Positions 10,944 through 27,901 of a DNA stretch of 64,000 nt are shown one piece after another (the first letter of the stretch is position 1; each line of letters begins with the position of its first letter). The position numbers and the translations under genes are program-made. The notes beneath the pieces are model-generated. The model searched no databases. It was given only the letters and a program-made list of their open reading frames with translations, and had not been told where the DNA came from. This DNA comes from Adineta vaga (taxonomy: Eukaryota; Animalia; Rotifera), in contig CP075494.1 in NCBI GenBank assembly GCA_021613535.1, positions 15,934,001-15,998,000 of the forward strand, in the 5' to 3' direction.

Positions 10944-11102
10944 TATTATTCAAGGATTTCCGAATAGTTTAGATGCGTATAATTGCTACAGATGAGACTT
11001 ATTTTCTTTTCTCTCGTTTGAACGCATATTTTGATTTTGATTTTGATTTTGATTTATACATAAAAATCAACATTTGAAGGATAAACACAGTCATCTTTTA
11101 TT

Positions 11103-11416
11103 CAGTGGCGGAGCCAGGATTTTGTACTAGGGGGGGGGCTCAGCCCCTAACTTCAAAATCGACTCTGAAAAAAAAATTTTTTCACTAGTTTCAAGGCTAA
11201 GTTGCATATGAAAACCAGGTCTCGGTACTGAAAAACCCAAAGTGAAAAGCAAAAAAAAAAAAAACCCTGTACTCCCCTTCGAGCTTAGTCGGGTTCGCGA
11301 AAAACCGGATCTTCACAATCTTTTTAGGCGCTAGGGGCAAAAAATTTTCTAGGGGGGGCGCGAAAGGTCGTAGGGGGGGCTGAGTCCCCTCTGGCCCCCC
11401 CCTGGCTCCGCCACTG
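11103..11416. mobile_element. hAT-type MITE, 314 bp
   Basis: Perfect 16-bp TIR cagtggcggagccagg / cctggctccgccactg; perfect 8-bp TSD cttttatt (11095-11102, 11417-11424). Confidence 0.95.
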
Positions 11417-11449: not shown

Positions 11450-12637
11450 TTATTTATTGTGAGTTGATATGTTTTGTTGTTCTAAGTTCCATTGAATTTT
11501 TGGTGGAATTAATTGAAGATTAACTCTATTTTGATATTTTTGTGCTAATACAATTAATGAAATAATTGTTTGATTCGATAATAATGTTGGTTCTAAACCT
11601 AATGAACGAAGATTTGTATTTATTGAATTATAATAATGAATTTCTTTTTCTTTTCGAGGATTATTTAAATGTTGAATTTCACATGGAATATTCATTAATT
11701 CATTTGATACTTTATAAACTAATTGAGCTAATTCTAAAACAGAAAATATTTCCGTAAATTGATTAAAAACACGATATTCTCCTTGTTGAGCTGGTTTTTC
11801 ACAAGCAATTTCAATACATTTAACTGTATCACGAATATTAATAAATGATCTTGTTTGTCCACCTTTTCCATAAACTGTTAATGGATGATCAAGTGCAACT
11901 TGTATACAAAAACGATTAAGAACAGTACCAAATATATGATCATAATCGAAACGATTAGCTAAAATTGGTGATAAATTTATTTCATCTGTATCATAACCAT
12001 AAACAACACCTTGATTTAAATCCGTTGCTCGTAAATTCCATGTTCGACAAGCAAAATTAATTTGATCACTATCCGATACTTTCGTTAAATGATAAAATGA
12101 ACCTGGTTGTTTTGGATATGGTAATCGATCAGATCGTCCTTTATATTCAATATTAATAAAACCTTCTTCAATATCAATATTAGGTGTTCCATATTCACCC
12201 ATTGTACCTAATTTAATCAAATGAGTATCAGATGAATATTCATGTAATGCCCATAAAATATTTAAATTGCCAACAGTATTATTAATATGTGTACGAATTG
12301 AATGATCATGATCAATCATTGAAAATGGTGCTGATCTTTGTTGAGCAAAATGAATTAAAACATGAAATTTTTTTTCACAATTAATTGTTTGACATAGAGA
12401 TGAATAATTTGTTATATCAAGATTAATTATATGAATAATTTTTCCTGTTAAACGTTTCCATTCTTGAACACGTTCTTCAAGTGAATAAATTGGTACAAGT
12501 GAATTTAAATGATGTTCTTCATCCCATTGTCGACGAATAAAATTATCAATTATAGTTATATCATGATTTCGTGCTGATAAATACAATGCTGTTGCCCATC
12601 CACAATAACCATCACCACCAGCTATTAAAATTTTCAT
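11450..12637 (-). CDS. SQD1: UDP-sulfoquinovose synthase (cyanobacterial/plant SQD1/SqdB type, extended SDR)
   Basis: GGDGYCGWATAL Rossmann motif, QRSAPFSMID, HLIKLGTMGEYGTPNIDIEEGF (catalytic Thr), PKQPGSFYHLTK (YxxxK with His), RATDLNQGVVYG, FGTVLNRFC, PLTVYGKGGQTR, RVFNQFTE; 395 aa, intronless, no transit peptide. Confidence 0.95.
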   Translation of the reverse strand: MKILIAGGDGYCGWATALYLSARNHDITIIDNFIRRQWDEEHHLNSLVPIYSLEERVQEWKRLTGKIIHIINLDITNYSSLCQTINCEKKFHVLIHFAQQRSAPFSMIDHDHSIRTHINNTVGNLNILWALHEYSSDTHLIKLGTMGEYGTPNIDIEEGFINIEYKGRSDRLPYPKQPGSFYHLTKVSDSDQINFACRTWNLRATDLNQGVVYGYDTDEINLSPILANRFDYDHIFGTVLNRFCIQVALDHPLTVYGKGGQTRSFINIRDTVKCIEIACEKPAQQGEYRVFNQFTEIFSVLELAQLVYKVSNELMNIPCEIQHLNNPRKEKEIHYYNSINTNLRSLGLEPTLLSNQTIISLIVLAQKYQNRVNLQLIPPKIQWNLEQQNISTHNK

Positions 12638-12978
12638 ATGGAAATCAAAAATTTCTTTTTTCTTAATTTAATACAATTCACAATATAAAAGATTATAGAA
12701 ATAGATGCTTTTATGAAATTCGGTCACCTAGATCAATGATTAATATTTCGATGATGTGATATATAATCGATCAAATGAATCGTGGATTTTTCAAACGTAC
12801 TATGTGAATGCTCTATCTTTTATCTATTTGTTTTTCTCTACATATACACAAAAAAATAGATGCAATTAACCGTATCCAAATACAAGGTTTCTTTTTCAGT
12901 CGCTTTTTTCATCAATAAGAAAGGCGATATTGAAAAGTATTCTTGAATACGTTTTCTATTTATTATTATTATTTGGAA
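12638..12978. promoter_or_regulatory. Probable bidirectional promoter between SQD1 and the GT4 gene
   Basis: 341-bp AT-rich spacer between two divergent ATGs; inferred from geometry only. Confidence 0.45.
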
Positions 12979-14073
12979 ATGAAGATTTTAATTGTAAGTG
13001 AATATCTTCATCCTCAAACAAGTGGAATAAGTGTTCGTATAGAATATTATATAAAATATTTAAGAAAATTTGATCATAATGTTACTGTTTATGGTCCAAA
13101 AGATTGTCCCACAGTAAATCATACATTATTCAGTATTCCATGTTATTTTATAAATAAAGATATGCGTATATGTTTTCCATCATTTCAATTATATAAAGAT
13201 ATTCTTTTTGGAAATTATCAAATGATACATATTGTTGGTCCAAATATATTTCTTTTTACAATTATTATTTATTTACTTTGTATATTAATGAATATTAATA
13301 TTTGTACATCTCATCATACAAATGTATATGAATTTACTAAAGAATATGTTAAGAATCGTTTCATTTTTCAATTAATACGTTGGTATGGGATTTATATACA
13401 GTATTATCCAACAATTTGGTTAAAAATTCCCATATTACATCCAGAACATTATACTGATTTGAAAATTCTTTGTAATAATTTTGATAAAGGACATATTATA
13501 TCAACAGGTATTGATACTCGTTTATTTTCGTTTTCGAAAAGTTTTATTCGAAATAAATTGATTTATATTGGAAGAATTGCACCAGAGAAAAATTTATTTC
13601 GTTTAATTGATCTATTTTCATTAATTGAGAAGAATTATTCATTAGATATTGTTGGTTTTGGTCCAAATGAAAATCAATTAAAATCTTATATTAAACAGAA
13701 AAATATTCAAAATATTCAATTTCTTGGCCGAATTCCCTATGATCAATTATATCAATATTATCAAACAGCACAAGCATTTCTATGTACAAGTTTAAATGAA
13801 TCTTATGGTTTTACATTACTTGAATCCCTTTCATGTGGAACACCAATAATTTATCCAAAATGTCATGTTTTTCAAAAATTATATCAAAAATCTTTTCCTC
13901 AACTAGAATATGATGTTAATAATAATCAAGAATTTCTTAATGTATTAACATATGTTGAAGAACATAGTGAACAATTGCGAGAACTTTCACGAAAATATGC
14001 GTTGAAATATTCATGGGAAACATCAACAAAAGATCTTTTAGAAATTTATAAAAAGATTTCTCGTTATCATTAA
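12979..14073 (+). CDS. GT4 (GT-B) glycosyltransferase, SqdX/SQD2-like candidate sulfoquinovosyltransferase
   Basis: ATG at 12979 gives MKILIVSEYLHPQTSGISVRI (cf. SqdX-type MRIALFTETFLPKVDGIVTRL); TSHHT, GID, YIGRIAPEKN, S..ESYGFTLLESLSCGTP (ExxxxxxxE); 364 aa, intronless; head-to-head with SQD1. Confidence 0.8.
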   Translation: MKILIVSEYLHPQTSGISVRIEYYIKYLRKFDHNVTVYGPKDCPTVNHTLFSIPCYFINKDMRICFPSFQLYKDILFGNYQMIHIVGPNIFLFTIIIYLLCILMNINICTSHHTNVYEFTKEYVKNRFIFQLIRWYGIYIQYYPTIWLKIPILHPEHYTDLKILCNNFDKGHIISTGIDTRLFSFSKSFIRNKLIYIGRIAPEKNLFRLIDLFSLIEKNYSLDIVGFGPNENQLKSYIKQKNIQNIQFLGRIPYDQLYQYYQTAQAFLCTSLNESYGFTLLESLSCGTPIIYPKCHVFQKLYQKSFPQLEYDVNNNQEFLNVLTYVEEHSEQLRELSRKYALKYSWETSTKDLLEIYKKISRYH

Positions 14074-14074
14074 G

Positions 14075-14134
14075 ATCTTGAGGGTGTGGGTGTAAAAGCA
14101 TTAGTATTTAGATACCGACACCCACCCTCAAGAT
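14075..14134. repeat. Telomere-type-repeat hairpin element directly after the GT4 stop codon
   Basis: Perfect 12-bp inverted ends atcttgagggtg / caccctcaagat, internal gggtgtgggtgt ... acacccaccc. Confidence 0.8.
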
Positions 14135-14354
14135 GGATATGCGGCATCACTCAAATAATGATGATATTTTTTCCTTTGTTTTATAAATATATAAAATGAT
14201 CACAGAAAATTATGATAATAAGATCTTAGTTATAAAATTCTAATGAATACAAACGAAATATTTGAGAAGGGATTTTTTTAACGAAGAAATAATTTGAAAA
14301 AAAAAGTTTTGTTTTCGAAAGACAAAAATTGAATATATCTAAATGAAATCTATT

Positions 14355-16704
14355 TTAAACTAATTTGCTTCGAAAAAATCGTCGAGTCAACCATGTCAAA
14401 ATAAAAAAGAATAAAATTGAAAGAAAATAACGAATTCTATTTAAAAACAAAAGAAGAATTAATTCTAAAAAGAAAAGAAGAAACTTACATTAATTTTTTC
14501 ATGATTGATTTTGATTTCGTTGAATGATATAATGGTTCTTTAAGTAAATATTTTTTAATTCCAATACAATAATTTCGAAGATAAATTGTCCAATCAAGTT
14601 CTTTTACATTAAAATTGAATTCCTTTTTTTTTGTTTTTGAACAAATTAAAGTAAAATAAAAAAAAAAGAATTTATTTTACTTGTTTATCAAATTGACTCA
14701 TTTGATTGAATAGAAGTTGACTATTATGATTTGAGAAGATCCATTGATTTGAAGCAAAATAATGTAATGTCGCAACGATATTATCGACTTTTTTACTTAA
14801 TTTTATCATTCTAAATACTTGGAGAAAATATTTCACTTCATTTTATTTGATTTTCCTTCTCACCTTGCTTTTCTCAATGTTAATATAGAAAATAAATCAA
14901 TAAAATATGCTGGAAGTTTGTGTTCAAGGAAATATCGAATATAGTAATAGAATCTAAATTAAATAAAATAAATGTAGAAACGTCGAATTTTATTCGAGAG
15001 TTATATATAATGAAAACAAGATTACTGTTGTAAGCATCCTCATGAATCAATAAGATATATATGTTTTAAATTTTCGAGAAAAAAAAAATCCCTGTACTCC
15101 CCCTCTAGGATAGTGTGATCAACTTGACTCTTCTTTTGAAAGTTATCGTATAAACGACCGGACACATTGACACAAAAAAAAGAAGAAATATTTGATATAC
15201 TTATTGGTAGTGAGAAAAAGATTTGGTTGAATAAATCGATAATTTTCAAATCCAAGTGATTTTTGTTCTCTTAATATTATTTGAACTAAAGAAAAGAATT
15301 TTTCATTGAAAAAGAAAAAAACCCGAAAGAAAATCAACATACAAAAATCTTTATAACGAAGACCTGTTTTATGATTCGATCCAGTTGAACAATTATAGAC
15401 AATTGGAATGGTTGATCTAAATAAAAAACCAAAAAAAAAGTCGATCTTTCCACCAAACATTTCGTTTTTCTTCTAATTACGAATCTTTTTTCATTGCAGT
15501 AAACCAAGCAATAGCTATTGTCATATTTGCTACTGTATCAACTGGAATTAATGGCTGATCAACTATTGGATTTGTTGAACCTACTCTTAATAAACATTTT
15601 CCTATCTAAATTAATTTATTCGAAATATTTAATTGATTTAGAAAAGTTTCATTTACTGAAACAATAATACTTGTTGCACCATTATAACTATCAATCCATC
15701 CCTTAACAAAACAAATTCAATTAAAAGAAGAAAACAACAAATGTTAAAGAAATATTTACTTGTATTGGTTCTTTCCATGTTGCACCAATAATTGATGGTC
15801 GAATTATTGCTGAGAAATAAAGAAAAAGATAAATGAGAGATAAAGAAAGTTTTTACCAAAAGGTAAATCTTTTGCTTGTTGAAAAATGAGATATTCAGCT
15901 AAAGATTTTGTATATGTATAAATATTTGGATAATTTTTTGCTAATTTTAATGTTAAATGATCAAAAACTTGTTGATCAATATTATCTAAAGCTTCTAATA
16001 ATAATTGTGGATTTTCATTTGTTGGATAAATAATTTCATCAATATCTGTACGATAATTATGAATATAAGCTGTAGATATATGAATACAACATTGTAGTTG
16101 TTTCATTTTTCTACATAAATTAATAATTGTTTGAACAGATAAAACATTCGATTTTAATGCATCTCTATAAAAAAAAAGAAATTTCATTCGTTTTTTTTTT
16201 CAATTAAATTTTTCAAAGAAATACTTTAATGGTTCAGAAAAACGAATTGATGCACCTGAATGAATAATAATATGACAATTATCAATTAATAATTGTTCAT
16301 CTTCATCTTTTAAATTAAAATTAATTTTTGTTAAATCACCAATGATTGGAATTAATTTTGATGGAAAATCTTCGTTGATTGAACGAATTTTATCAAATAA
16401 CTAAAATGAAATTTATCTTTTAAAAGGAAAAACAATAGAAAAGATTTTACAGGTAATGAACAAAATTGATGAATTCGATCAGATACATTTTTCTCACGTT
16501 TTGATCGTATTAAGAGATAAATACAATGAATATCTTGAAAAGAAAAATATTTATTTTATAAAATAAATCAAATAAATAACCTTGACATGATCGTAGAAGT
16601 TTTTCAATAATTTGTTTACCAACAAAACCAGTTCCACCTGTTATAAAAACTGATTTCCCACTAAAAAATGTACTAATCAATTTATCATTATTGTAATTCG
16701 TCAT
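14355..16704 (-). CDS. FAR: Fatty acyl-CoA reductase (fatty-alcohol forming), multi-exon
   Basis: Reconstructed across many short GT-AG introns: [95 protein letters not shown], sterile domain [21 protein letters not shown]-terminal TM; stop at 14355-14357. Confidence 0.9.
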
Positions 16705-17485
16705 TGAAATATTCTTTTAGATTTTTTAAGTTAATATACACGTTTCTTTTTCTTCGTATTATCGATATGTATATATCTATTCGAATCAAGAAGATAAAAT
16801 CACTGAAGCATAAAAACTCAATGAAATATCTATTCATCTCATTGGTCTTTATTTCTCTAATTGCTTTATCATAACGAAATATGAGACAGAATATTTGTAT
16901 CTCTATAAGATTATATTTCACAAAGAATTATTTTATATATGAATTTATCATTCATTTACGAATAATTTATATAAAAAGGTTTTTTTGCTTTTCTGTCTTT
17001 AATTTAAGATAAAAATATATATATATCTATCTAAGTACAAAGGCAAATTGATAAACATAAGTTCTGTTTAACATCTGGATAAGATCATTTATCAAGGATA
17101 AAGATTTCTTCAAGACGAATAAATAAATAAATTTCCTTTTTTTTTAATTTAATCTCAAAACGAAAGGAACGAATATCTTTATACTTAATAACTTTTCTTC
17201 AATTCCCAAACAAATAGTATTTCTATTTAAAGAACAAGAAATAACAACTGATTTATAATTAATAAAATTTGTTTTTCTTTCTACAATACAAGACTTATGT
17301 CCTCAATGACTTTAAGACATATTTTATCTATCGAAATGAAACAATCAGTGTTTATTGAATTGCATCTGGTTTAATTTATTTCAAATGAAGAAGAAGACAA
17401 AGCGAAAAGAAACGTCATGCAGAAAAACACAAACATATTAGGTTTAATAGTTAAAAAAAAGGTTATTTGAATAAAAGTAAAGTGT

Positions 17486-17973: not shown

Positions 17974-19534
17974 AGTTCGTTTGTCGACAGATTATCTTCA
18001 AGAGAATTATACGAATGTTGTAATTATCTTCTGAGAAGACTCGGGTTCTTTTTTTCTACTTATATAGGAAAGAGAGAAAGAAAGAAATGTTGTTAATATA
18101 TGTACAAACAAGAACTGATATGAGAAAAAGATATTTGTAGGATCGATTTAGATTATTATTCTTATTATTAGTTGTTTGTCTTTTCTTCTTCTTCTTCTTT
18201 TCCTTTTTCTGTTGATTGAGTAGATTTGTCGTAGAAAATTATGTTGAAAGAAGGTTATTTATACATACGACAATCAATTAACGAACAAAAGAATATTTCT
18301 TTCTTCCTCAACAATTCTTCTCTTCGAACTTATTTATCAATATCTATTATGATTCATATAAGAAACAAATGTCCTTATCGTCTCAAGGTTAACAGATATA
18401 TTTACATGATTATTACTTCTAAATTAGAAATTGAGTTTTTACTTGAAATTGAATAATAAATAAAGAAAAATGATTTTTTTTTCAAACGTGCGGTTTTTTT
18501 TCCACTAAATAATCTAATTAATCAAATATTTTAATCATAGATAAGAAATAAAAGATATATATTTGTCATGTTTATTAAAGAGATAATCTCAATAGTATCA
18601 AAATTTTCTTTTTCTTTAATGTCGATTATAGGCCTATTGAGGACAAATAACAAGAGAGATTATTTTTTATTATCAATCTTCAAAAGAGATATTTGTCAAT
18701 AAATCAACCATGAAAATTAAACAACCTTGAGATATAAGGTACTTTTTCAATATTTTCTCTTTTTTATTTTGTCATATAATATCACGAGAAAGGTAAATAA
18801 GAGGATGTCATAATCTCACTACACCAGGTATTCATATTTTCAACGAAGTACTCAAAGATATCCAGTATGTAAGATATTACCCATCCAAGCACGACGAATA
18901 AATAGCGGAGTATCAGAGTGGGCATCTCTCTTTCACCAAAAACGTGTTTTATCCTTTGTGTAATAAAATGACATTCACATAGGAGATAAATGGCTATGTA
19001 TTCTGAAAGTTGAGGAATATGAGTCGAGTAGACTCTCACTTTGAAATGATTTTGTCTCGTATTCTTATAACTGATATGGGTAACGAAGCCATTACTTTTG
19101 TGTTAAATATATGGTTTGATAGTGAAATGATTCCCATTGATTAACTCATAGGATATCGTCACGTTTATCTTTTGATACCTTGAATATTGGTATTAACATA
19201 CACATGAGTAAATGTCATAGAAATAAGAAAATACCTTTAATTTTAGATTTTCTAAATTATGTACCGATATGTCAATATATCCTTCATAAAATCTATTCAA
19301 CGCATGATTTATTTATCTCATTAATGTTTGTTTTTAAATAATACACAAACGAATGTATGAATATACTAGGTGATACATATATATATATATATAAGTTACA
19401 TATTTACAAACTAAATTGTGATATAGTTGACTTCATCATTAACTGCTTTACTGAATTTTTGTTTTCTTCATATACGTATCGTTTTTTTTCCACTAACAAT
19501 TCGTCATACAATTTTAGTCGTCATTAACGAAGAT

Positions 19535-22500
19535 ATGGGTGAAGCTTCAAAAGATTCAGTACAACGAAATACACCTGAAGATCGTTTAGGTTCTGTTGTT
19601 TATTCTTCGAAAGATAATGAAAGTATGCATAAATCATTAAATGGTGAATTTACTCTTTATCGTTTATTAATTGATCAAATATTAGATGGAAAATATTCAT
19701 TAAATTTAAAAAATTCTCATTCCTTAGCAAAATATTTTCATCCAGATGATGAAAAAGATAAAAAATTATTAAAAGAATATGATACAAAATATCAATCAAA
19801 TCAAGCGATTTATTGGTATACGAGAGAATCACCTGTTTATAAAAATTTAAATAAAGCATTGAGAACACAAAATACAAATGATATTGTACCTTTTGCAACA
19901 TTTATTAAAGATTTAAATCATCAATTAGATGATGAACATCAATTATTTATTAAACAATTACAAACAAATCAATTTCAAGTTTATCGAGGACAATTTATTA
20001 GTAAAGATGAAATAATTCGTTTAAAATCAAGTATTGGTGATTTAATATCAATGAATTCATTTCTATCAACAAGTACAAATCGAAAAAAAGCTTTTGAATT
20101 TGCAACAAGTCGAGCACCACCAACAGATGACTTATGTTCTGTTTTATTACAAATGAATATTGATATAAATATTCAATCAAAACCATATGCTGATATTAAA
20201 CGATTAAGTGCTTTTCCTGATGAAGAAGAAATTCTCTTTGTTGTTGGTTGTGTATTTAAAATTGAGAAAATTTCTTTTAATGAAAAAGATAATCTTTGGA
20301 TGGCTGAATTAAGTTTATGTTCAGAAAAGAATTCTGATATGAAAAAATTTTCAAAAGATTTAAATAAAGATTTAAATGAACAAAATAATTTAATTTCTTT
20401 AGCAAATTATTTAATTGATATGAATAAATATGATCAAGCTCAAATCTTTTTAGAATCAATTTTAAATAATAATATTCTCAAGAATTCAATTGATTTTGCT
20501 TATTGTTATTTTATTTTTGGTAAAGTTCATGAAAAAAAAGGTAATTATATGAATTCAATTGAAAATCTTAATAAATCATTAGATTATTTATTAAATGATA
20601 AAAAATTAAATGAACATTCACTTGTATCTGAATGTTATAATCAAATGGGATCGGTTTATTGTTCACAAGAAGATTATCAAAAATCATTTGAAGTTTATGA
20701 TACAGCATTAGATACAAAAAATAATATTTCATCAATAACTTATTTTGGTTTAGCACAAATTCATTATAAAGAAAAAAATCATCATTTAGCTTTAGATTAT
20801 TTAAATAAAATTCTAAAAAATCAACAAGAATTAAAATCATCATTTATTGCCAATGTTTATATTCATATTGCAATGAATTTAACTGCACTTGGTAAAACAG
20901 AAGAAGCAGGAAAAATTCTTAATAATATTATTCAATTACAAACAAAAGAACTACATGATAAACATCCGGATTTAAGTTATACTTATCATCAAATTGGTTT
21001 AATGTATTTAGAACAAAATGATTTTGAGAAATCTTTAGAATTTATTAATAAAGCTTATCAATTACAATTAGATTCTTTACCAAATAATCATCCTGATTTT
21101 GCTGAAACTTTTCAAAATTATGCGGAATATTATTTGAAAAAGAAAAATTTCGATAAATCTTTATTTTATTTTGAAAAACGTTTAGAAAATCAATTGAAAA
21201 CATTATCATGGGATCATCCAAATGTAATGAAAACTTATTACGATCTTGGAAATATTCATTGGAAAAAAAGAAATTATAATCAAGCATCTGATTACTTTCA
21301 AAAAATTCTTCAAGCTGAATTAGAAAGAAAAAAAATTGGTGAATCAGCATTAAGTACTTCGTATAAAACACTTGCAGATCTCTATTTTGATCAATATAAA
21401 ACAAGTTTAGACAAAAATGTTTTAGATCAAGCAATACCTTTTTATCTTAATTATCTTAAAAATGAATTAGAAACAAAATTAGTTGAAGATGAATCATTAA
21501 TTGATGTTTATAAAATTCTTGCAGAAATTTCTTATAAAAAACGTCAATTAAATCATTCATTATTATATTATAATCGTTTACTTAATTGTTATTTTCAAAA
21601 AGAATCTTTACATAAAAAAGAAATTCGTGAAACTTATGAATTAATTCAAAAGATTTATTTAAAACGAAAAAATCTTAATCAATCCTTATTATATTATTCA
21701 AATTTACATTCTAATGAAATTGAAAATAAATCTCGACATATAAAAAATGTTCATTTTGAAAATTGTTATTTAGATCAAACATTTCATTATTTTTCAAATC
21801 TTCTCAAAAAACAAATGAAAACAAATTCACAAAATCTTCCAAGAATAAATGGATTGAATTTTATTTTAGGAAATATTTGTTATGATAAAAAAGATTATGA
21901 TAAATCATATAAATATTTCTCTTTATTATTAATCAATGAATTAAATAAGAAATTATATAATGATAATTCATTAAAAACTCTTTATGAAACTATTGGAAAT
22001 ATTTATTTGAAAAAAACAGATTATAATCGATCATTAATTTATTATTTTCATTCATTAAATTGTCAATTAAATGAAGAAAGTTTTTCTCAAATTGGAAAAA
22101 TCTTTTTAATCAAAGATTATTTTATTCATTCAAGAAATGATAAATCAATGACGAAACTTGATAATTATTTAAATAATTTTCATTTAGAAAATACTTTAAT
22201 TCAGCATGTTGCTTTTTATTTTACAAATTTATTACACAATCCATTGAAACAATTTTTAACAAATGAAATTTATGAAATTCTTGGAAATATTTATTTAAAA
22301 CAACAAAATTATTATCAAGCATTGAATTATTTTCAAAGTTTACTTAATCAACAAATGAAAGAGAATTCTTCATTAGTATGGATTTATCTTGTTATTGCTG
22401 ATATTTATTTAAAACAAGGTCATTCAAATCAAGCTCAACAATTTTATCAATATTCATTGAATTTAGCTCGACAATTTCATTCATCAAATCAATCTTTAAT

Positions 22501-22555
22501 TGAATTAATTCAAAACAGAATACAAACTGGAATTATTCCTCTATATTATGAATAG
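19535..22555 (+). CDS. ADP-ribosyltransferase (R-S-E class) domain + TPR repeat array
   Basis: First ATG at 19535; WYTRESPVYKNLNKALR, VYRGQ, FLSTS, DEEEILF; then many TPRs (HPDLSYTYHQIG, HPDFAETFQN, HPNVMKTYYDLG). Confidence 0.9.
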   Translation: MGEASKDSVQRNTPEDRLGSVVYSSKDNESMHKSLNGEFTLYRLLIDQILDGKYSLNLKNSHSLAKYFHPDDEKDKKLLKEYDTKYQSNQAIYWYTRESPVYKNLNKALRTQNTNDIVPFATFIKDLNHQLDDEHQLFIKQLQTNQFQVYRGQFISKDEIIRLKSSIGDLISMNSFLSTSTNRKKAFEFATSRAPPTDDLCSVLLQMNIDINIQSKPYADIKRLSAFPDEEEILFVVGCVFKIEKISFNEKDNLWMAELSLCSEKNSDMKKFSKDLNKDLNEQNNLISLANYLIDMNKYDQAQIFLESILNNNILKNSIDFAYCYFIFGKVHEKKGNYMNSIENLNKSLDYLLNDKKLNEHSLVSECYNQMGSVYCSQEDYQKSFEVYDTALDTKNNISSITYFGLAQIHYKEKNHHLALDYLNKILKNQQELKSSFIANVYIHIAMNLTALGKTEEAGKILNNIIQLQTKELHDKHPDLSYTYHQIGLMYLEQNDFEKSLEFINKAYQLQLDSLPNNHPDFAETFQNYAEYYLKKKNFDKSLFYFEKRLENQLKTLSWDHPNVMKTYYDLGNIHWKKRNYNQASDYFQKILQAELERKKIGESALSTSYKTLADLYFDQYKTSLDKNVLDQAIPFYLNYLKNELETKLVEDESLIDVYKILAEISYKKRQLNHSLLYYNRLLNCYFQKESLHKKEIRETYELIQKIYLKRKNLNQSLLYYSNLHSNEIENKSRHIKNVHFENCYLDQTFHYFSNLLKKQMKTNSQNLPRINGLNFILGNICYDKKDYDKSYKYFSLLLINELNKKLYNDNSLKTLYETIGNIYLKKTDYNRSLIYYFHSLNCQLNEESFSQIGKIFLIKDYFIHSRNDKSMTKLDNYLNNFHLENTLIQHVAFYFTNLLHNPLKQFLTNEIYEILGNIYLKQQNYYQALNYFQSLLNQQMKENSSLVWIYLVIADIYLKQGHSNQAQQFYQYSLNLARQFHSSNQSLIELIQNRIQTGIIPLYYE

Positions 22556-23222
22556 AAACATGAAGAAAATCTAATCATTTATTTCAAAAACTAAACTTTG
22601 AATGTAAAAAAAAAAGACAAGTTTGTTTCATAAATATATCGTGTTACTTTGATCTATATATAAATATTTCCTCCTTGATCAATCAGGTGACATCTAATAG
22701 TTCACTCGAGGATCATAGGAAGTCATCCTCGACGAGCGTTATTCATAAATTATATTGTAGAAGTTTTTCTGATGCAAGAATTGATTTTGCTTTTGTTTTA
22801 AAATGAAATTCTTAATAACTTTAGTTAATACAAAACAAAGTACATAAAGATATTTTCCGATAAAATTCAGATGACAAAAAATTATAGCCATAGAGACGAA
22901 ATCTTGAGATTTCAACATCATATCGACTGTCTGGAAAATTTCTTTGTACTATAGAACGATAAGGTTCGATCTTATCTTCATGAATTACAAGAAAAATAAC
23001 TGCGTCATTTTCTTTTCATATTTTACATATTTAGTCTTTATTGAAAAAGGAATGTTTGAATAATTTACGAAATATCTTACAGATTGAAATACACTTCAAG
23101 ATCGTTTAGGTTCTGTTATTTATATTCGAAGTCGAATTATATAGACAGCTACTCTATCTAATAGGAAATAATGTTTACGAGTGACATCTAGAGAACAATG
23201 TATTCAATGGAATAGAGAAACA

Positions 23223-26200
23223 ATGAATAGGAAAAAAAAATGCTTATTTCATCGATTTTTTGGATATAGAAATGAAAAAGGAGAAATGAATTTAAATAAA
23301 GATGAAATTCGTGTTTTAATTTTAAACGAAAACGAAAATAAAAATGAAGAATTATTTCATTTAAAAAAAGGATATTATCTTCAAATTATATTATCATCTT
23401 CATTAACATATAAAAATATTCGATTCTTTACAAATTATTCTAATGATAATTTTCAACGAAATAAATATGAAGAATTTCAATGGATTTCTTCTTCAAACAA
23501 TTCATTTGATCGTGCAAATCGTTATGTATTAATTCATTGTCTCAAATCTGGTTCATTTCGTTATTATTTTACAATTGATGGAAGCAACTATAAAGAAAAT
23601 CGAAATGGTCAAGGTTATTTTCATATCTCAATTGATTTAATTTTATCAAATGAAATTTTAAATCCAAATTCGATAACATGTCAAACAATTTTATCCAAAT
23701 GTTTAGGTTCCTATTCCGAATGGTTATCACGTCTTGAAGTTTCATATCATTCTGGTTATAATTTTCTTCATTTTACGCCAATACAAAGTCTTTCAGAGAT
23801 TTCTAATTCATCCTATTCAATAAAAGATCATCATAAATTAAATTCATTATTTCAATGTTCATATGAACAAATCGGAAAAATAATTGAAGAAATTTATCAA
23901 AAATGGAATATCTTTTCTTTAAGTGATCTTGTTTATAATCATGTAGCAATTGATTGTTTATTAATCTCAAATCATCCAGAAATAACATATAATTTAATTA
24001 ATAGTCCATATTTAAAATCAGCTGTTCTTCTTGATTCAATTTTAATTCAATTTACTCGTGATATTCATGAAGGAAAACTTTTATACAAAGGAATTTCACG
24101 AGATATTAAAGAAGATCAATTTGAATTGATAAGAAAATATTTACTCGATGAACAAATTCCAAAATATCGTTTATGGGAATATTATATTGTTGATATTGAT
24201 CGAATTATTCAAGAATTTCATGAATTTTTATCTAAAGAAAACGATTGTCCAGAAAAAAGTTCGAATAAAAAACTTGAAATTGAACATAAAACTTATCAAC
24301 GAATGAAAAGTTCAATTAATTTTCAATCGGCTAAAGAAATTTATTTTTATCAACGAAAAGATTTCAATGAGAAAAATCAATGGATTAAATTTGCTTGTGA
24401 AGATTTAAAAAATGATTTAATTAATTTAAATAAAAATTTCATTCAAAATTTAAATGAAAAACTTTCACGAGCAATTGATAATTGTCTTAAATCATTTTAT
24501 TATCGATTCTTTTCATATGATGGACCAAAATATAAACAAATTTCTTTTCCATCAATTTTATTTGTGCCAAATTATTTCTCTTATCCAAATCAACAATTTA
24601 AACATCCAGATGAAATTAATCTTTTAATTGAAAATGATACTCAATATCAAACATTTCTTATGGCACATAATGGATGGGTTATCAATGATGATCCAAGAAG
24701 AAATTTTGCTAATGAAGGTGAAGATGTTTATTTATGTCGTGATTTAATTCCATGGTGTGATTTAATTAAATTACGTTTTGGTTCTCGAAGTGATGATTGT
24801 CCAATGTTATATTCATATATGAAAGAATATACACGATTAATAGCCAAAACATTTCATGGTTGTCGTCTTGATAATTGTCATTCAACACCGATTTGGTTTC
24901 TACAAGAAATGATGGATTATGCAAGAGAAATTGATACGAATTTTTATATTAATGCTGAATTATTTACAGGAAATATTTCAATTGATAATTATTATATAAA
25001 TCAAATAGGAATTAATTCATTGATAAGAGAATCTTATCGTGCATTTGATCCTTATCAATTAGGTGAAATGATCTCAATAATAAGTCAATCAAATCCTATT
25101 GGTTCATTTTTACAATTAAATATTTCTCCATTAAAATCAACAAAATTATATTCATTATTTTATGATCAAACACATGATAATCCATCATTAATACAAAGAA
25201 GATCAGTTGAAGATCTGCTTCCTCGTTCCGCTTGTGTTGCAATGACAAATTCTCCAATTGGATCAAATCGTGGTTATGATGAATTAATTCCACATTATAT
25301 TGATGTTGTTCATGAAACAAGATTTTATGCAAAATGGGGTTATAAACAACAACAAGTCAATGAAAAAACTGCCATGATTGCAATACGAAAAGCTTTGAAT
25401 CATTTACATATAAATCTTTGCCAACAAGGTTTTACACAATTAATGATTGATCAATTATCAAGTTCAGCTTTATTAATAACTCGTCATAATCCAATAAATC
25501 ATCAATCTATTTTATTAATAGCTCATACATCTTTTTATCAATCAAATGAGAAATGGGAATATATTAGTTCATTAACAATTGAAGGTATTATTAATGAAAT
25601 TTTATTTGAAGGTACAATTCATCATCCACAAAATGAAGAATCAGTTCGAGATTTTCAACGATCAAAAACTTATTTAAATGGACTTGAAAAGACGAAAATT
25701 TATTTTAAAGAACATGTTTTAATTGAACAAAGTCGTTGTATTCGTTTAACATCACCCAATTCACCTGATTATACAGGTTATCGAACAATTGAATTTACCG
25801 ATGAATTTTCTCCTGGATCAATAATTGCTTTACAAATTTCACTTCTTCCACAAATTTCACAATCAATTTCTAATTTAAAAGAAATGTTAAATCAATTTGA
25901 TAATTTTCAAAGTGAATTTTTTGAAATCATACGAAAATTAACATTAATTGATCTTCAACGTATTCTTTATCGTTCATCAAATGAAGAACAAGCAGATGGA
26001 AATGGTTTTGATGTTTATACAATACCTGATTATGGAAAATTAAATTATTGTGGTTTACAAGGTCTTATGTCAATTTTAGAAAAAATTCGTTTACAAAATT
26101 CTCTTCGTCATCCATTAATTGTCAATTTAAAACAAGGTAATTGGTTAATCGATTATATTGTTAATAGACTTCAAATATATTCAACTACGAAACAATTATC

Positions 26201-27901
26201 ACAATGGTTGGAAAAAGCATTTTCCTATGTAAAAACATTAACACGTGTTATGATACCAGTTTATTTTGATTTAATAATAACAAAAACTTATCGAATATTA
26301 TTAGAACATGGTTGGTCATTAATGACACCATTTATATCACAATCATCAACATTTATTCGTGCACTTGCACAAACAAGTATTCAATTAATAAGTATTGTAC
26401 CAAATGCACGTTTACCATTATTATCATCGAATTTACGTCAACCACAACCAATTCAAGATATTGATCAACAAACAATGGAACAAATTCAACAATGTCCATC
26501 ATTAGCTGCTGGTCTTCCGCATTTTTCAAGTGGAATATGGAGAAATTGGGGACGAGATACATTTATATCATTACGTGGTCTTCTTCTTTTAACTGGTCGA
26601 TATGAAGAAGCTCGTTATTTAATTTTAGCTTATGCTGGATGTCTTCGTCATGGTTTAATACCAAACTTATTAGCTGATGGAAAGAATGCTCGTTATAATG
26701 CACGAGATGCTGTTTGGTGGTGGTTATATTCGATTTCAAATTATACGAATTCAGTACCGAATGGATATGAAATTCTTTCGGATATTGTATCACGTTTATA
26801 TCCAACTGATGATAGTCCTTTACAATCAGTTGGTCTACATGAACAAACATTATCGGATGTTATTCAAGAAATTCTGATTCGTCATATTCAATCAGTTAAA
26901 TTTTGTGAACGTGGTGCTGGACCTTTATTAGATTCTGACATGACAAATGTAGGTTTTAATAATCAAATTGGAATTGATCTTAAGACAGGATTTGTTTATG
27001 GTGGAAATCAATGGAATTGTGGAACATGGATGGATAAAATGGGTTCAAGTAATAAAGCAAAAAATAAAGGACATCCAGCAACACCACGTGATGGATCAGC
27101 AATTGAATTAATAGGATTATGTCGTGCAATACTTACATGGTTAATTCAGATGAATAAACAAGGTTATTATCCATATGATTCTGTTCAAACATCACTCAGT
27201 TCGGGAGATGAAATCGATATTTCCTTTCAAAAATGGATCGATCAAATTGATGAAAATTTTGAAAAAGAATTCTGGATTGATCTAACAAATTCTTCAAAAT
27301 ATGTTAATCGAAAAGAAATTTATAAAGATACAATTAATTCAACCTTTCAATGGACTGATTTTCAATTAAGACCAAATTTTCTTATTGCAGCTGTTGTTGC
27401 TCCAGAGATGTTTGATAAAACTCATATATGGTTAGCTTTAAAACAAGTTGAACAAATTCTTCTCGGAAAATATGGAATCAAAACACTTGATCCAAAGTAA
27501 ATTGAAACCGAGGTTTTTTGTCCAATATAATTTTTGTTTTTAGTGATTATAATTATATTGGTGATTATGTTAATGACGATGATTCAAATGATTATAAACG
27601 AGCACATGGTTTTAATTATCATAATGGCCCAGAATGGTTGTGGTTGACTGGTTATTATATTCGTGCTAAACTTTATTGGTCAAAACAACAAGATGATCCT
27701 TTGATTGTCGAACAAACAATTGCACATATTGAAAAGATTCTTTCTGCACATATGGAATTAATTTTATCGAACGATTGGAAAGGTTTACCAGAATTAACGA
27801 ATGCTGATGGAAAACTATGTCCTTATTCCTGTTCTGTCCAAGCATGGTCTTCTGCAACACTTTTAGAAGCTTTATATGATCTCACACAAACTAAGAACTA
27901 A
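23223..27901 (+). CDS. AGL: Glycogen debranching enzyme (4-alpha-glucanotransferase / amylo-1,6-glucosidase); one 47-bp intron 27497-27543; start at 23223 or 23286
   Basis: GYNFLHFTP, DLVYNH, RLDNCHSTP, AELFTG, DQTHDN, LAAGLPHF..WGRDTFISLRG, GTWMDKMG, YHNGPEW, GLPELTN, QAWS; splice LDP N|DYNY. Confidence 0.95.

Follow-up and report, generated by a model that had tools for sequence, protein, structure and literature searches.

Chromosome 5 of the bdelloid rotifer Adineta vaga carries two adjacent genes of non-animal origin, one for a predicted UDP-sulfoquinovose synthase of the SQD1/SqdB type and one for a GT4 retaining glycosyltransferase, a candidate sulfoquinovosyltransferase. Judged by their sequences and genomic contexts, they probably constitute a functional foreign sulfoquinovose module of chimeric origin that was fixed in bdelloids and whose most likely product would be the sulfolipid SQDG. 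SQDG synthesis is generally attributed to photosynthetic organisms and some bacteria. Metazoa and Fungi lacked an SQD1 homologue in a survey from 2011 (PMC3220709), and our literature search for an SQD1-GT4 pair in bdelloids found no paper describing one. If true, this would be the first instance of animal-autonomous synthesis of a sulfolipid or sulfoquinovoside, and a two-step pathway cluster in an animal genome drawn from two different foreign sources.

Setting of the gene pair in the rotifer chromosome

The analysed stretch of 64,000 nt (the window, to which all positions refer) corresponds to C5:15.93-16.0 Mb in the 6-contig, 100.8 Mb Adineta vaga assembly and lies ~1 Mb from the end of the 16.9 Mb chromosome 5. 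SQD1 occupies positions 11450-12637 on the (-) strand (an ATG-initiated ORF of 395 aa, single copy in the genome) and GT4 positions 12979-14073 on the (+) strand (364 aa). The second ORF extends over 12943-14073, and we set the start of GT4 at the in-frame ATG at 12979 (MKILI...), because all orthologues begin there. The two genes stand head-to-head, separated by a spacer of 341 bp between the divergent start codons (12638-12978), presumably the promoter region of both. Since both ORFs are uninterrupted and full-length compared with their homologues, and one RNA contig is collinear with SQD1, we consider both genes intronless. Their codon usage is extremely AT-rich, with a GC3 of 5.6% for SQD1 and 8.2% for GT4.

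On its 3' side, SQD1 is separated from the upstream gene by a MITE-like element (11103-11416) with perfect 16-nt terminal inverted repeats (11103-11118 and 11401-11416). An RNA contig of depth 24.6 covers 11097-11293 and ends in a run of A at 11264. Directly after the GT4 stop codon follows a GC-rich hairpin (14075-14134) with 17-nt arms at 14075-14091 and 14118-14134 that are 88% complementary. Convergent with GT4, a multi-exon gene on the (-) strand at about 14165-16727 was identified by tblastx synteny and spliced RNA contigs as encoding a fatty acyl-CoA reductase (FAR), its counterparts in A. ricciae and R. sordida carrying PF07993 and PF03015. Nine GT..AG introns of 47-247 bp were found in this gene in RNA contigs of the sequencing runs X1, X4 and X5, the spliced joints showing CT..AC ends, i.e., GT..AG on the (-) strand. 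Other neighbours in the window encode a 7tm_1 GPCR, EGF and LDLa proteins and a eukaryotic glycogen debranching enzyme. Because the FAR gene is spliced and of animal type, the pair sits in animal DNA, and its non-animal origin and integration in an animal chromosome among animal-type genes are both supported. All these elements of a preliminary description of the locus stood up to scrutiny: two intact intronless genes 341 bp apart, host-like AT-rich codons, a flanking MITE and hairpin, and linkage to the intron-rich FAR gene, which adjoins GT4 in a chromosome-scale placement.

A predicted UDP-sulfoquinovose synthase

The SQD1 protein matched Arabidopsis SQD1 (PDB 1qrr_A) with an E-value of 5.5e-140 and 470 bits, query residues 2-384 aligning to chain residues 3-383. 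The motifs GGDGYCGW, GTMGEYG and YHLTK, the latter two already recognized in the preliminary description, correspond in the alignment to the NAD-binding loop and to T145, Y182, H183 and K186 of the Arabidopsis enzyme, and the equivalents of R101 and Q209 are kept as well. For T145, Y182, H183 and K186, the His beside the Tyr and the NAD-binding glycine motif, we presume the roles in SQD1 that are described in the structure papers. Plant SQD1 (1qrr/1i24) and bacterial SqdB share length, the NAD-binding GxxGxxG and the active-site equivalents with the rotifer protein. Unlike plant SQD1, however, the latter is encoded with extreme AT codons in an animal nuclear genome and has no plastid transit peptide, and its lineage is Eremiobacterota-like, not cyanobacterial.

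The best NCBIfam family was NF041015, to which the rotifer protein aligned over its full length with 438 bits. The cut-off of this family is 575 bits, and the bona fide SqdB of Eremiobacterota (L001) likewise falls below it with 449 bits, so the cut-off appears to be tuned to archaeal Agl3. In Sulfolobus, Agl3 is the UDP-sulfoquinovose synthase for N-glycans, and sulfoquinovose ends on a protein glycan, not on a lipid. The SQD1 orthologues of A. ricciae, A. steineri and R. sordida are 87%, 82% and 78% identical, respectively, and the best bacterial sequences reach 68%. The match to Arabidopsis SQD1 and the retained catalytic residues support the assignment of the first gene as a genuine SQD1/SqdB with predicted UDP-sulfoquinovose synthase activity.

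A GT4 glycosyltransferase distinct from SqdX

The second protein contains the Pfam domains PF00534 (Glycos_transf_1), PF13692 and PF13439 (Glyco_transf_4), and E-x7-E (E274, E282) and GR...EK are invariant. Its AlphaFold model (pLDDT 90.5) has a GT-B fold with a TM of about 0.72 to GT4 structures, the nearest being MshA, BshA and PimA; the fold search returned generic GT4 enzymes only, from which neither donor nor acceptor could be told. In the clade members the N-terminal half is basic (pI 8.2-9.8), which is weak evidence for a lipid acceptor given the Lys-rich proteome. Identity is 65-78% to the bdelloid orthologues and 31-43% to the next relatives.

The preliminary description had expected this protein to group near SqdX/SQD2, and here our results diverge from it. 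In comparisons with cyanobacterial SqdX encoded beside sqdB, the rotifer protein shares no more than 20-23% identity, reaches 57-78 bits in phmmer and falls into a separate clade in the tree, so that we rejected orthology with SqdX. A search of NCBIfam yielded no SqdX-specific match either, the best family being MGlcDAG synthase with 67 bits, far below its cut-off. The cyanobacterial sqdB-sqdX operon likewise pairs a UDP-sulfoquinovose synthase with an adjacent GT4, but one from a different clade.

Conservation, selection and transcription in bdelloids

Synteny around the pair holds in four other rotifer assemblies. The gene order in A. ricciae is FAR - p450 - GT4(-) - SQD1(+), with a spacer of 376 bp. 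A bdelloid-like metagenome contig (L123) carries SQD1 and then GT4 in tandem with a 170-bp spacer, the order also seen in the cyanobacterial operon, and at the examined locus of R. sordida SQD1 stands beside a truncated GT4 remnant, together with FAR. An old linkage of the two genes is supported by these arrangements. The divergent layout had been read as a sign of co-regulation by a shared eukaryotic promoter; this is not supported, as the genes are in tandem in L123 and giant-virus contigs show the head-to-head layout too.

Both genes are under purifying selection, with dN/dS values of 0.14-0.32 for SQD1 and 0.21 for GT4 (NG86; with so extreme an AT bias, the dS values are probably skewed) instead of the values near 1 that had been named beforehand as counter-evidence. 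Regarding transcription, four sequencing runs were used, of which X1, X4 and X5 are proven RNA by their spliced joints; in X2 no spliced joints were seen, which leaves it unproven as RNA. SQD1 is transcribed: it is covered by contigs of X1, X4 and X5, and one RNA contig is collinear over 11464-12102. GT4 is covered by X1 contigs that differ by 7-9% from the window and by X2 contigs; X1 is thus the single run of proven RNA that supports its transcription, and we give the X2 contigs little weight. No contig from any of the four runs mapped to positions 12673-12869 of the spacer.

Relatives of the GT4 in giant viruses

In a quick tree, the rotifer GT4 was placed inside a small giant-virus/chlamydia-like GT4 clade, with SH-aLRT values of 82-96 on the enclosing nodes. 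Members of this clade with 37-43% identity to the rotifer protein occur in a cassette of metagenomic Nucleocytoviricota (L081, L086, L087 and the GVMAG contigs L105 and L108). An SQD1-like gene adjoins the GT4 in 4 of the 13 non-rotifer contexts (L081, L086, L087, L100), three of which (L086, L087, L100) have the same head-to-head layout as the rotifer pair; in the other nine, no SQD1-like gene was found nearby. The SQD1-like neighbour scores 304 bits against Arabidopsis SQD1. All SQD1 partners outside rotifers are of a divergent type, 39-41% identical to rotifer SQD1 and, in the viral cassette, on a very long branch. L087 carries an NCLDV capsid gene, and its GT4 has a CDP-alcohol phosphatidyltransferase, a CDP-diglyceride synthase and an abhydrolase as neighbours, while acyltransferases (L084, L108), a desaturase (L084) and LCAT (P0138) were found next to other viral GT4 genes.

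Giant-virus contigs in which a member of the GT4 clade is partnered by an SQD1-like gene suggest that sulfolipid synthesis may be encoded by viruses. According to a preprint (10.64898/2026.09.28.754671), SQDG 35:1 appears in a non-photosynthetic flagellate only upon infection with the giant virus CroV, and virus-encoded synthesis would provide a genetic explanation for the appearance of SQDG in an infected heterotrophic flagellate. Our literature search for a giant-virus cassette of an SQD1-like gene and a GT4 found no paper, and this by-product of the analysis may matter as much as the rotifer pair. Additionally, P0145 and P0324 are both 2724 bp long and P0144 and P0439 both 11754 bp, coincidences that may point to two further co-occurrences of a GT4 with an SQD1-like gene.

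Different ancestry of the two genes

The SQD1 tree placed the bdelloid clade (support 100/100) inside a Vulcanimicrobiota (Eremiobacterota) clade (100/100); plant, algal and archaeal SQD1 were left out of the SQD1 and GT4 trees, as was plant SQD2. The expectation that SQD1 would group among non-metazoan sequences was thus borne out. The donor-like SQD1 genes have 68% GC, compared with 27% for rotifer SQD1. The viral SQD1-like genes, with their low identity and very long separate branch, were rejected as its source.

The Eremiobacterota also pair sqdB with a GT4: at 4 of the 5 loci examined (L001, L003, L005, L006), their own GT4 gene overlaps sqdB. Compared pairwise by BLASTP, however, the GT4 of this operon and the rotifer protein are not similar (E = 32), and in a profile comparison the C-terminal domain alone aligned, with 17% identity. 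A close homologue of rotifer GT4 was not found in any of the five Eremiobacterota genomes searched, and we therefore rejected a derivation of GT4 from the Eremiobacterota sqdB partner. From their placement in the trees, SQD1 appears to derive from an Eremiobacterota-like bacterium and GT4 from another gene pool, giant virus or chlamydia-like. With these different source pools the cluster is most likely chimeric, built either in the rotifer lineage or in an unsampled hybrid donor, before the split of Adinetidae and Philodinidae. Of the preliminary description, the horizontal acquisition of a sulfoquinovose module is supported by the bacterial nesting of SQD1, the integration into an animal chromosome and the old linkage, whereas the single co-transfer of a linked pathway is not supported, given the separate affiliations of SQD1 and GT4 and the unrelated GT4 of Eremiobacterota.

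The strongest alternative concerns the origin only and assumes the joint arrival of both genes from one unsampled donor, in which an Eremiobacterota-type sqdB was already combined with a GT4 of the giant-virus/chlamydia-like clade. It would account for the tight linkage in every bdelloid lineage seen and for the operon-like look of the tandem sqdB-then-GT4 order with its short spacer in L123. Furthermore, within rotifers the sequence of GT4 has changed more quickly than that of SQD1 (A. vaga and Rotaria share 65% identity for the former and 78% for the latter); by extrapolation, a donor GT4 orthologue would be expected at about 40-45% identity, the level of the best non-rotifer matches. However, no such donor combination was seen, the sqdB-overlapping GT4 genes at four of the five Eremiobacterota loci are unrelated, the five genomes searched lack a close homologue, and the SQD1 partners of the clade outside rotifers are without exception of the divergent type. 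We therefore regard joint arrival as a serious but distinctly less probable account than an assembly from separate sources.

Predicted product of the pair

According to the proposed mechanism, SQD1, having no transit peptide and being presumably cytosolic, would convert UDP-glucose and sulfite to UDP-sulfoquinovose, and the adjacent GT4 would then attach the sulfoquinovose to an acceptor molecule, for which diacylglycerol is the most likely candidate; this would yield SQDG, an anionic phosphorus-free lipid. UDP-sulfoquinovose is the probable donor because the linkage is conserved in rotifers and, in giant viruses, members of the GT4 clade repeatedly adjoin an SQD1-like gene. A lipid is the probable acceptor because the viral members of the clade have genes of lipid metabolism as neighbours. 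The best functional reading is therefore that the pair makes a sulfoquinovoside, possibly SQDG, and it is supported at the level of sequence and gene context. Phosphate sparing, membrane protection in desiccation and sulfite disposal, which the preliminary description proposed, would be conceivable physiological roles.

A real module could also make a product other than SQDG, GT4 then sulfoquinovosylating a protein glycan, ceramide, sterol, fatty alcohol, alkylglycerol or small metabolite. Its position outside the SqdX/SQD2 family would fit this, as would the small-molecule acceptors of its structural neighbours MshA and BshA and the protein-glycan precedent of Sulfolobus N-glycans; for a fatty alcohol or alkylglycerol, it may be noted that in both Adineta and Rotaria FAR has stayed only a few kb away from SQD1 despite rearrangement. 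Yet to our knowledge, SQDG is the sole known product of SQD1-plus-GT4 pairs in bacteria and plants. The viral members of the clade moreover lie among glycerolipid genes (CDP-DAG synthase, acyltransferases, LCAT), and the one preprint on giant-virus infection reports SQDG (10.64898/2026.09.28.754671). A different sulfoquinovoside thus seems unlikely to us, and SQDG remains the favoured product.

Somewhat more doubtful still is the idea that the two genes are functionally unrelated, GT4 using an ordinary UDP-sugar and SQD1 feeding another transferase or having shifted to a different SDR activity. In that case they would be neighbours merely because foreign genes cluster in the distal regions of bdelloid chromosomes, for which the location of the window close to the chromosome end, the different phylogenetic origins and the majority of GT4 clade members without an SQD1-like neighbour could be cited. 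In contrast, at least three bdelloid lineages have retained the two genes side by side in spite of an inversion, the SQD1-specific active-site residues are all retained, and the GT4 clade independently adjoins a different SQD1-like lineage in four contexts, for which chance is no explanation. Finally, bacterial contamination or misassembly, which the intronless genes with prokaryotic or viral relatives might suggest, was rejected in view of the chromosome-scale placement, a GC3 of 6-8% vs donors with 68% GC, the spliced animal genes in the flanks, the synteny in four other rotifer assemblies and a rotifer SQD1 gene tree that fits vertical descent.

More tentatively, and with odds we would put somewhat below even, the favoured reading of a foreign module making SQDG may be extended: bdelloids would have an endogenous sulfoquinovosyl lipid made by a chimeric cluster, the GT4 clade would represent a third class of sulfoquinovosyltransferases beside SqdX/SQD2 and SqdD, giant viruses would make SQDG in non-photosynthetic hosts by means of this clade, and a sulfoquinovose cycle might operate together with a separately acquired sulfoquinovosidase. 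Regarding sulfoglycolysis, a YihT aldolase was not found in the A. vaga genome with the E. coli query, and the YihS-like gene is a weak match, so that the genes found do not amount to a full pathway of the E. coli type; a YihQ-like sulfoquinovosidase is encoded in the same genome at C5:4.60 Mb, unlinked to the pair. The bacterial-type sulfoquinovosidase of bdelloids (preprint 10.64898/2026.02.11.705467) and other acquired genes are, like the pair, intronless, ameliorated, expressed, distal and conserved among bdelloids, but the former is a single catabolic enzyme, whereas SQD1 and GT4 form a biosynthetic pair of two ancestries.

A sulfoquinovose gene pair in a rotifer chromosome

In this animal the pair forms a sulfoquinovose module that is real and ancient, is expressed and under selection, and has a chimeric ancestry; the claim is directly testable. 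SQD1 (11450-12637, minus strand) is an open reading frame of 395 aa with an ATG start. GT4 is encoded on the plus strand; its frame is listed as 12943-14073, but the in-frame ATG at 12979 is the start in all orthologues and yields a protein of 364 aa. The two genes are arranged head-to-head and face away from one another, with 341 bp between their start codons. Both frames run without interruption and are full-length compared with their homologues; GC3 is 5.6% in SQD1 and 8.2% in GT4. A MITE-like element bounded by GC-rich terminal inverted repeats, 16 nt long and perfect, occupies 11103-11416, and a GC-rich hairpin lies just 3′ of the GT4 stop codon (14075-14134). Frames, repeat and hairpin, along with the motifs GTMGEYG and YHLTK, are all present as the preliminary description had them. 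Over the MITE-like element, a high-depth RNA contig spanning 11097-11293 terminates in an A run at 11264; the contig reflects either transcription of the repeat or the polyadenylated end of the gene upstream.

The window corresponds to positions 15,934,001-15,998,000 of chromosome C5 (16,930,519 bp) in a 100.8 Mb, six-contig assembly, which places the pair ~1 Mb from one end. The other large ORFs of the window are animal-type, encoding a rhodopsin-family GPCR, EGF and LDL-receptor-A proteins, a eukaryotic glycogen debranching enzyme and an URGCP-like GTPase. GT4 adjoins a fatty acyl-CoA reductase (FAR) gene (about 14165-16727, minus strand), recognized by homology to Adineta ricciae and Rotaria sordida genes with NAD_binding_4 and Sterile domains. 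Three public runs contain nine joints in this gene, each skipping 47-247 bp whose ends read GT..AG on the minus strand; these runs are therefore RNA, and FAR is a spliced host gene, in agreement with the claim that the pair is embedded beside an intron-rich host gene. Together with the chromosome-scale placement and the animal-type neighbours, this excludes contamination. Further along the window, a 1042-aa ORF (19427-22555) encodes both an NAD:arginine ADP-ribosyltransferase domain and numerous TPR repeats, and the eukaryotic-type debranching enzyme is a single open frame of 1439 aa (23181-27500).

SQD1 nests among Vulcanimicrobiota

SQD1 matches the solved Arabidopsis SQD1 over its whole length (E 5.5e-140) and keeps the NAD-binding glycine motif as well as the equivalents of R101, T145, Y182, H183, K186 and Q209. 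Judged from this alignment, its function as UDP-sulfoquinovose synthase is near certain, and the original assignment as SQD1/SqdB holds. The same function is the only strong NCBIfam family for the protein, at 438 bits against a cut-off of 575 that a genuine Eremiobacterota SqdB, with just 449, does not reach either. The protein begins straight at the Rossmann fold and thus has no plastid transit peptide. The gene is single-copy in the assembly.

The best protein matches come from A. ricciae (87%), A. steineri (82%) and R. sordida (78%), which marks the genome as that of a bdelloid of the Adineta vaga type; they are followed outside rotifers by Eremiobacterota/Vulcanimicrobiota MAGs with at most 68% identity; Arabidopsis SQD1 is clearly less similar than the best bacterial proteins. 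In an IQ-TREE phylogeny that left out plant and algal sequences, eight rotifer and rotifer-like sequences formed one clade (100/100) that falls inside a clade of Vulcanimicrobiota (100/100 and 100/99), with Cyanobacteria, Acidobacteriota and others outside. This is the predicted position among non-metazoan sequences. Within the rotifer clade, Rotaria splits first, then A. steineri, then A. vaga together with A. ricciae, an order that fits vertical descent from one acquisition before the Adinetidae/Philodinidae divergence. Donor-like SQD1 genes have 68% GC vs 27% in the window gene, so amelioration is complete. A 2011 survey reported zero SQD1 homologues in Metazoa (PMC3220709), and no publication on rotifer SQD1 turned up in our full-text searches.

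GT4 belongs to a virus- and chlamydia-associated clade

Pfam domains (PF00534, PF13692, PF13439), the invariant E-x7-E and GR..EK motifs and a GT-B structure model (pLDDT 90.5; closest structures MshA, BshA and PimA) establish the second gene as a GT4 retaining glycosyltransferase. Its proposed membership in the SqdX/SQD2 family has to be rejected, as cyanobacterial SqdX proteins encoded directly 3′ of sqdB are 20-23% identical to it and form a separate clade. Bdelloid GT4 orthologues are 65-78% identical. When 1.8 billion representatives were searched exhaustively with a profile, only 29 clusters fell below E 1e-30 (31-43% identity), after which scores fell to generic GT4 levels. Among the contigs carrying such genes, L087 contains an NCLDV major capsid protein gene; L081, L084 and L086 are gene-dense, have 21-24% GC and carry mimivirus-type DUFs or topoisomerase IB; L105 and L108 are GVMAG contigs from IMG/VR. 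Clade member P0184 occurs on contigs with a chlamydial Hc1 histone-like gene, and L099 is bacterial. In a quick tree, the bdelloid GT4s (support 100) nest within this clade, with P0136 and P0184 as closest sisters.

Broken GT4 fragments (L092-L095) are located on chromosomes C2 (15832376-15832812) and C3 (7210122-7210474), with 50-79% identity over pieces and several stop codons. No SQD1 remnant adjoins these fragments, which may be what is left of duplicated genes.

Predicted substrate and acceptor

Of 13 contexts outside rotifers, four have a GT4-clade member directly beside an SQD1-like gene of 384-388 aa: L087 (4820-9095), L081 (8001-10306), L086 (209-2542, plus a twin contig) and L100 (141-2488), a contig of 62% GC. 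The layout is head-to-head in three of them. These SQD1-like partners are 59% identical to one another and 39-41% to rotifer SQD1, align full-length with Arabidopsis SQD1 (304 bits) and retain the Thr and YHxxK; their lineage is abundant in metagenomes, where the JGI label is UDP-sulfoquinovose synthase. On sequence grounds, we regard them as a divergent second lineage of that enzyme. Since the GT4 clade is repeatedly coupled to two UDP-sulfoquinovose synthase lineages, it is most simply read as a candidate sulfoquinovosyltransferase, and the predicted use of UDP-sulfoquinovose by the rotifer GT4 is probable.

Lipid genes accompany viral GT4s of the clade: L087 has an abhydrolase, a CDP-alcohol phosphatidyltransferase and a CDP-diglyceride synthase, L084 an acyltransferase together with a cytochrome-b5 desaturase, and L108 an acyltransferase; LCAT adjoins P0138, and L107 has an Mpo1-like fusion. 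Proteins of the clade have basic N-terminal halves, and the heterotrophic flagellate Cafeteria is reported to contain SQDG 35:1 only under infection with the giant virus CroV (2026 preprint 10.64898/2026.09.28.754671). Together, we infer, these observations favour a glycerolipid acceptor, and SQDG is a plausible product of the rotifer pair. The combination of capsid gene, SQD1-like gene, GT4 and lipid genes in L087 resembles a sulfolipid cassette encoded by a virus; no paper on giant-virus sulfoquinovose genes emerged from full-text searches.

Chimeric ancestry and linkage across rotifers

In Eremiobacterota, sqdB is preceded and overlapped by a GT4 gene of their own in four of five loci examined (L001:4826-7161, L003:4814-7188, L005:4793-7185, and L006). 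Compared pairwise, this GT4 and that of rotifers show no similarity (E = 32), a profile comparison aligned the C-terminal domain only (17% identity), and five Eremiobacterota genomes contain nothing closely homologous to the rotifer GT4. Outside rotifers, the SQD1 partners of the GT4 clade are without exception of the divergent type. The rotifer pair therefore joins an SQD1 and a GT4 of separate gene pools. We favour, at about an even chance, two separate transfers that became neighbours in the rotifer; that an unsampled donor already carried this combination, absent from both sampled pools, is a more doubtful origin. The sqdB-coupled GT4 subfamily of Eremiobacterota, unrelated to SqdX as well, may be a further uncharacterised type of sulfoquinovosyltransferase.

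SQD1 and GT4 stay adjacent in A. ricciae, in the order FAR, p450, GT4 (minus), 376 bp, SQD1 (plus), methyltransferase, ABC transporter. They do so too on L123, a gene-poor metagenome contig of 32% GC whose proteins fall within the rotifer clades and where GT4 follows SQD1 on the same strand after a 170-bp spacer. The R. sordida locus examined retains SQD1 and, upstream on the opposite strand, a GT4 remnant of ~150 C-terminal residues (L103:5906-6353), with FAR on the other side; the remnant is either a truncated copy or an incomplete assembly, and other Rotaria assemblies contain intact GT4s. Given the tandem order on L123 and the head-to-head pairs of viruses, the divergent layout is neither universal nor evidence for a special bidirectional eukaryotic promoter, as had been proposed. 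In both Adineta and Rotaria, FAR lies only a few kb from SQD1, though on opposite sides (window 14165-16727, L102:616-4193, L103:12236-15232); simple synteny or a functional tie to lipid metabolism could account for this.

Selection and expression

By the preliminary description, a dN/dS near 1 or a lack of transcription would have counted against the pair. NG86 estimates range from 0.14 to 0.32: 0.14 for SQD1 between A. vaga and A. ricciae, 0.32 and 0.23 in other SQD1 comparisons, and 0.21 for GT4. With A or T at almost every third position, dS is probably underestimated and the true ratios are likely lower. Transcription is clear for SQD1, to whose coding sequence contigs from the spliced RNA runs X1, X4 and X5 (two studies) align, and comes for GT4 from one proven RNA run only, X1, with contigs at 13186-13388 and 13668-14028 that differ from the window by 7-9%; contigs identical to the window derive from X2, a run without observed splicing. 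No contig of X1, X2, X4 or X5 covered the spacer at 12673-12869. Such contigs are uninformative on strand, ends and expression level. One X4 contig (record 12; 12456-12637) matches the window precisely up to the SQD1 start codon and has five more letters that do not match it, which a trans-spliced leader or a difference between strains might explain.

Further sulfoquinovose genes

Elsewhere in the genome, a YihS-like gene is a weak match (30% identity), and a search with the E. coli YihT aldolase found no counterpart. An intronless 682-aa open frame (L118; C5:4602455-4604191), 11 Mb away from the pair along C5, encodes a YihQ-like sulfoquinovosidase that shares 43% identity with YihQ of E. coli. 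This agrees with the bacterial origin inferred for a bdelloid sulfoquinovosidase (preprint 10.64898/2026.02.11.705467). With the pair and the YihQ-like gene both on C5, the animal encodes predicted synthesis as well as hydrolysis of sulfoquinovosides.
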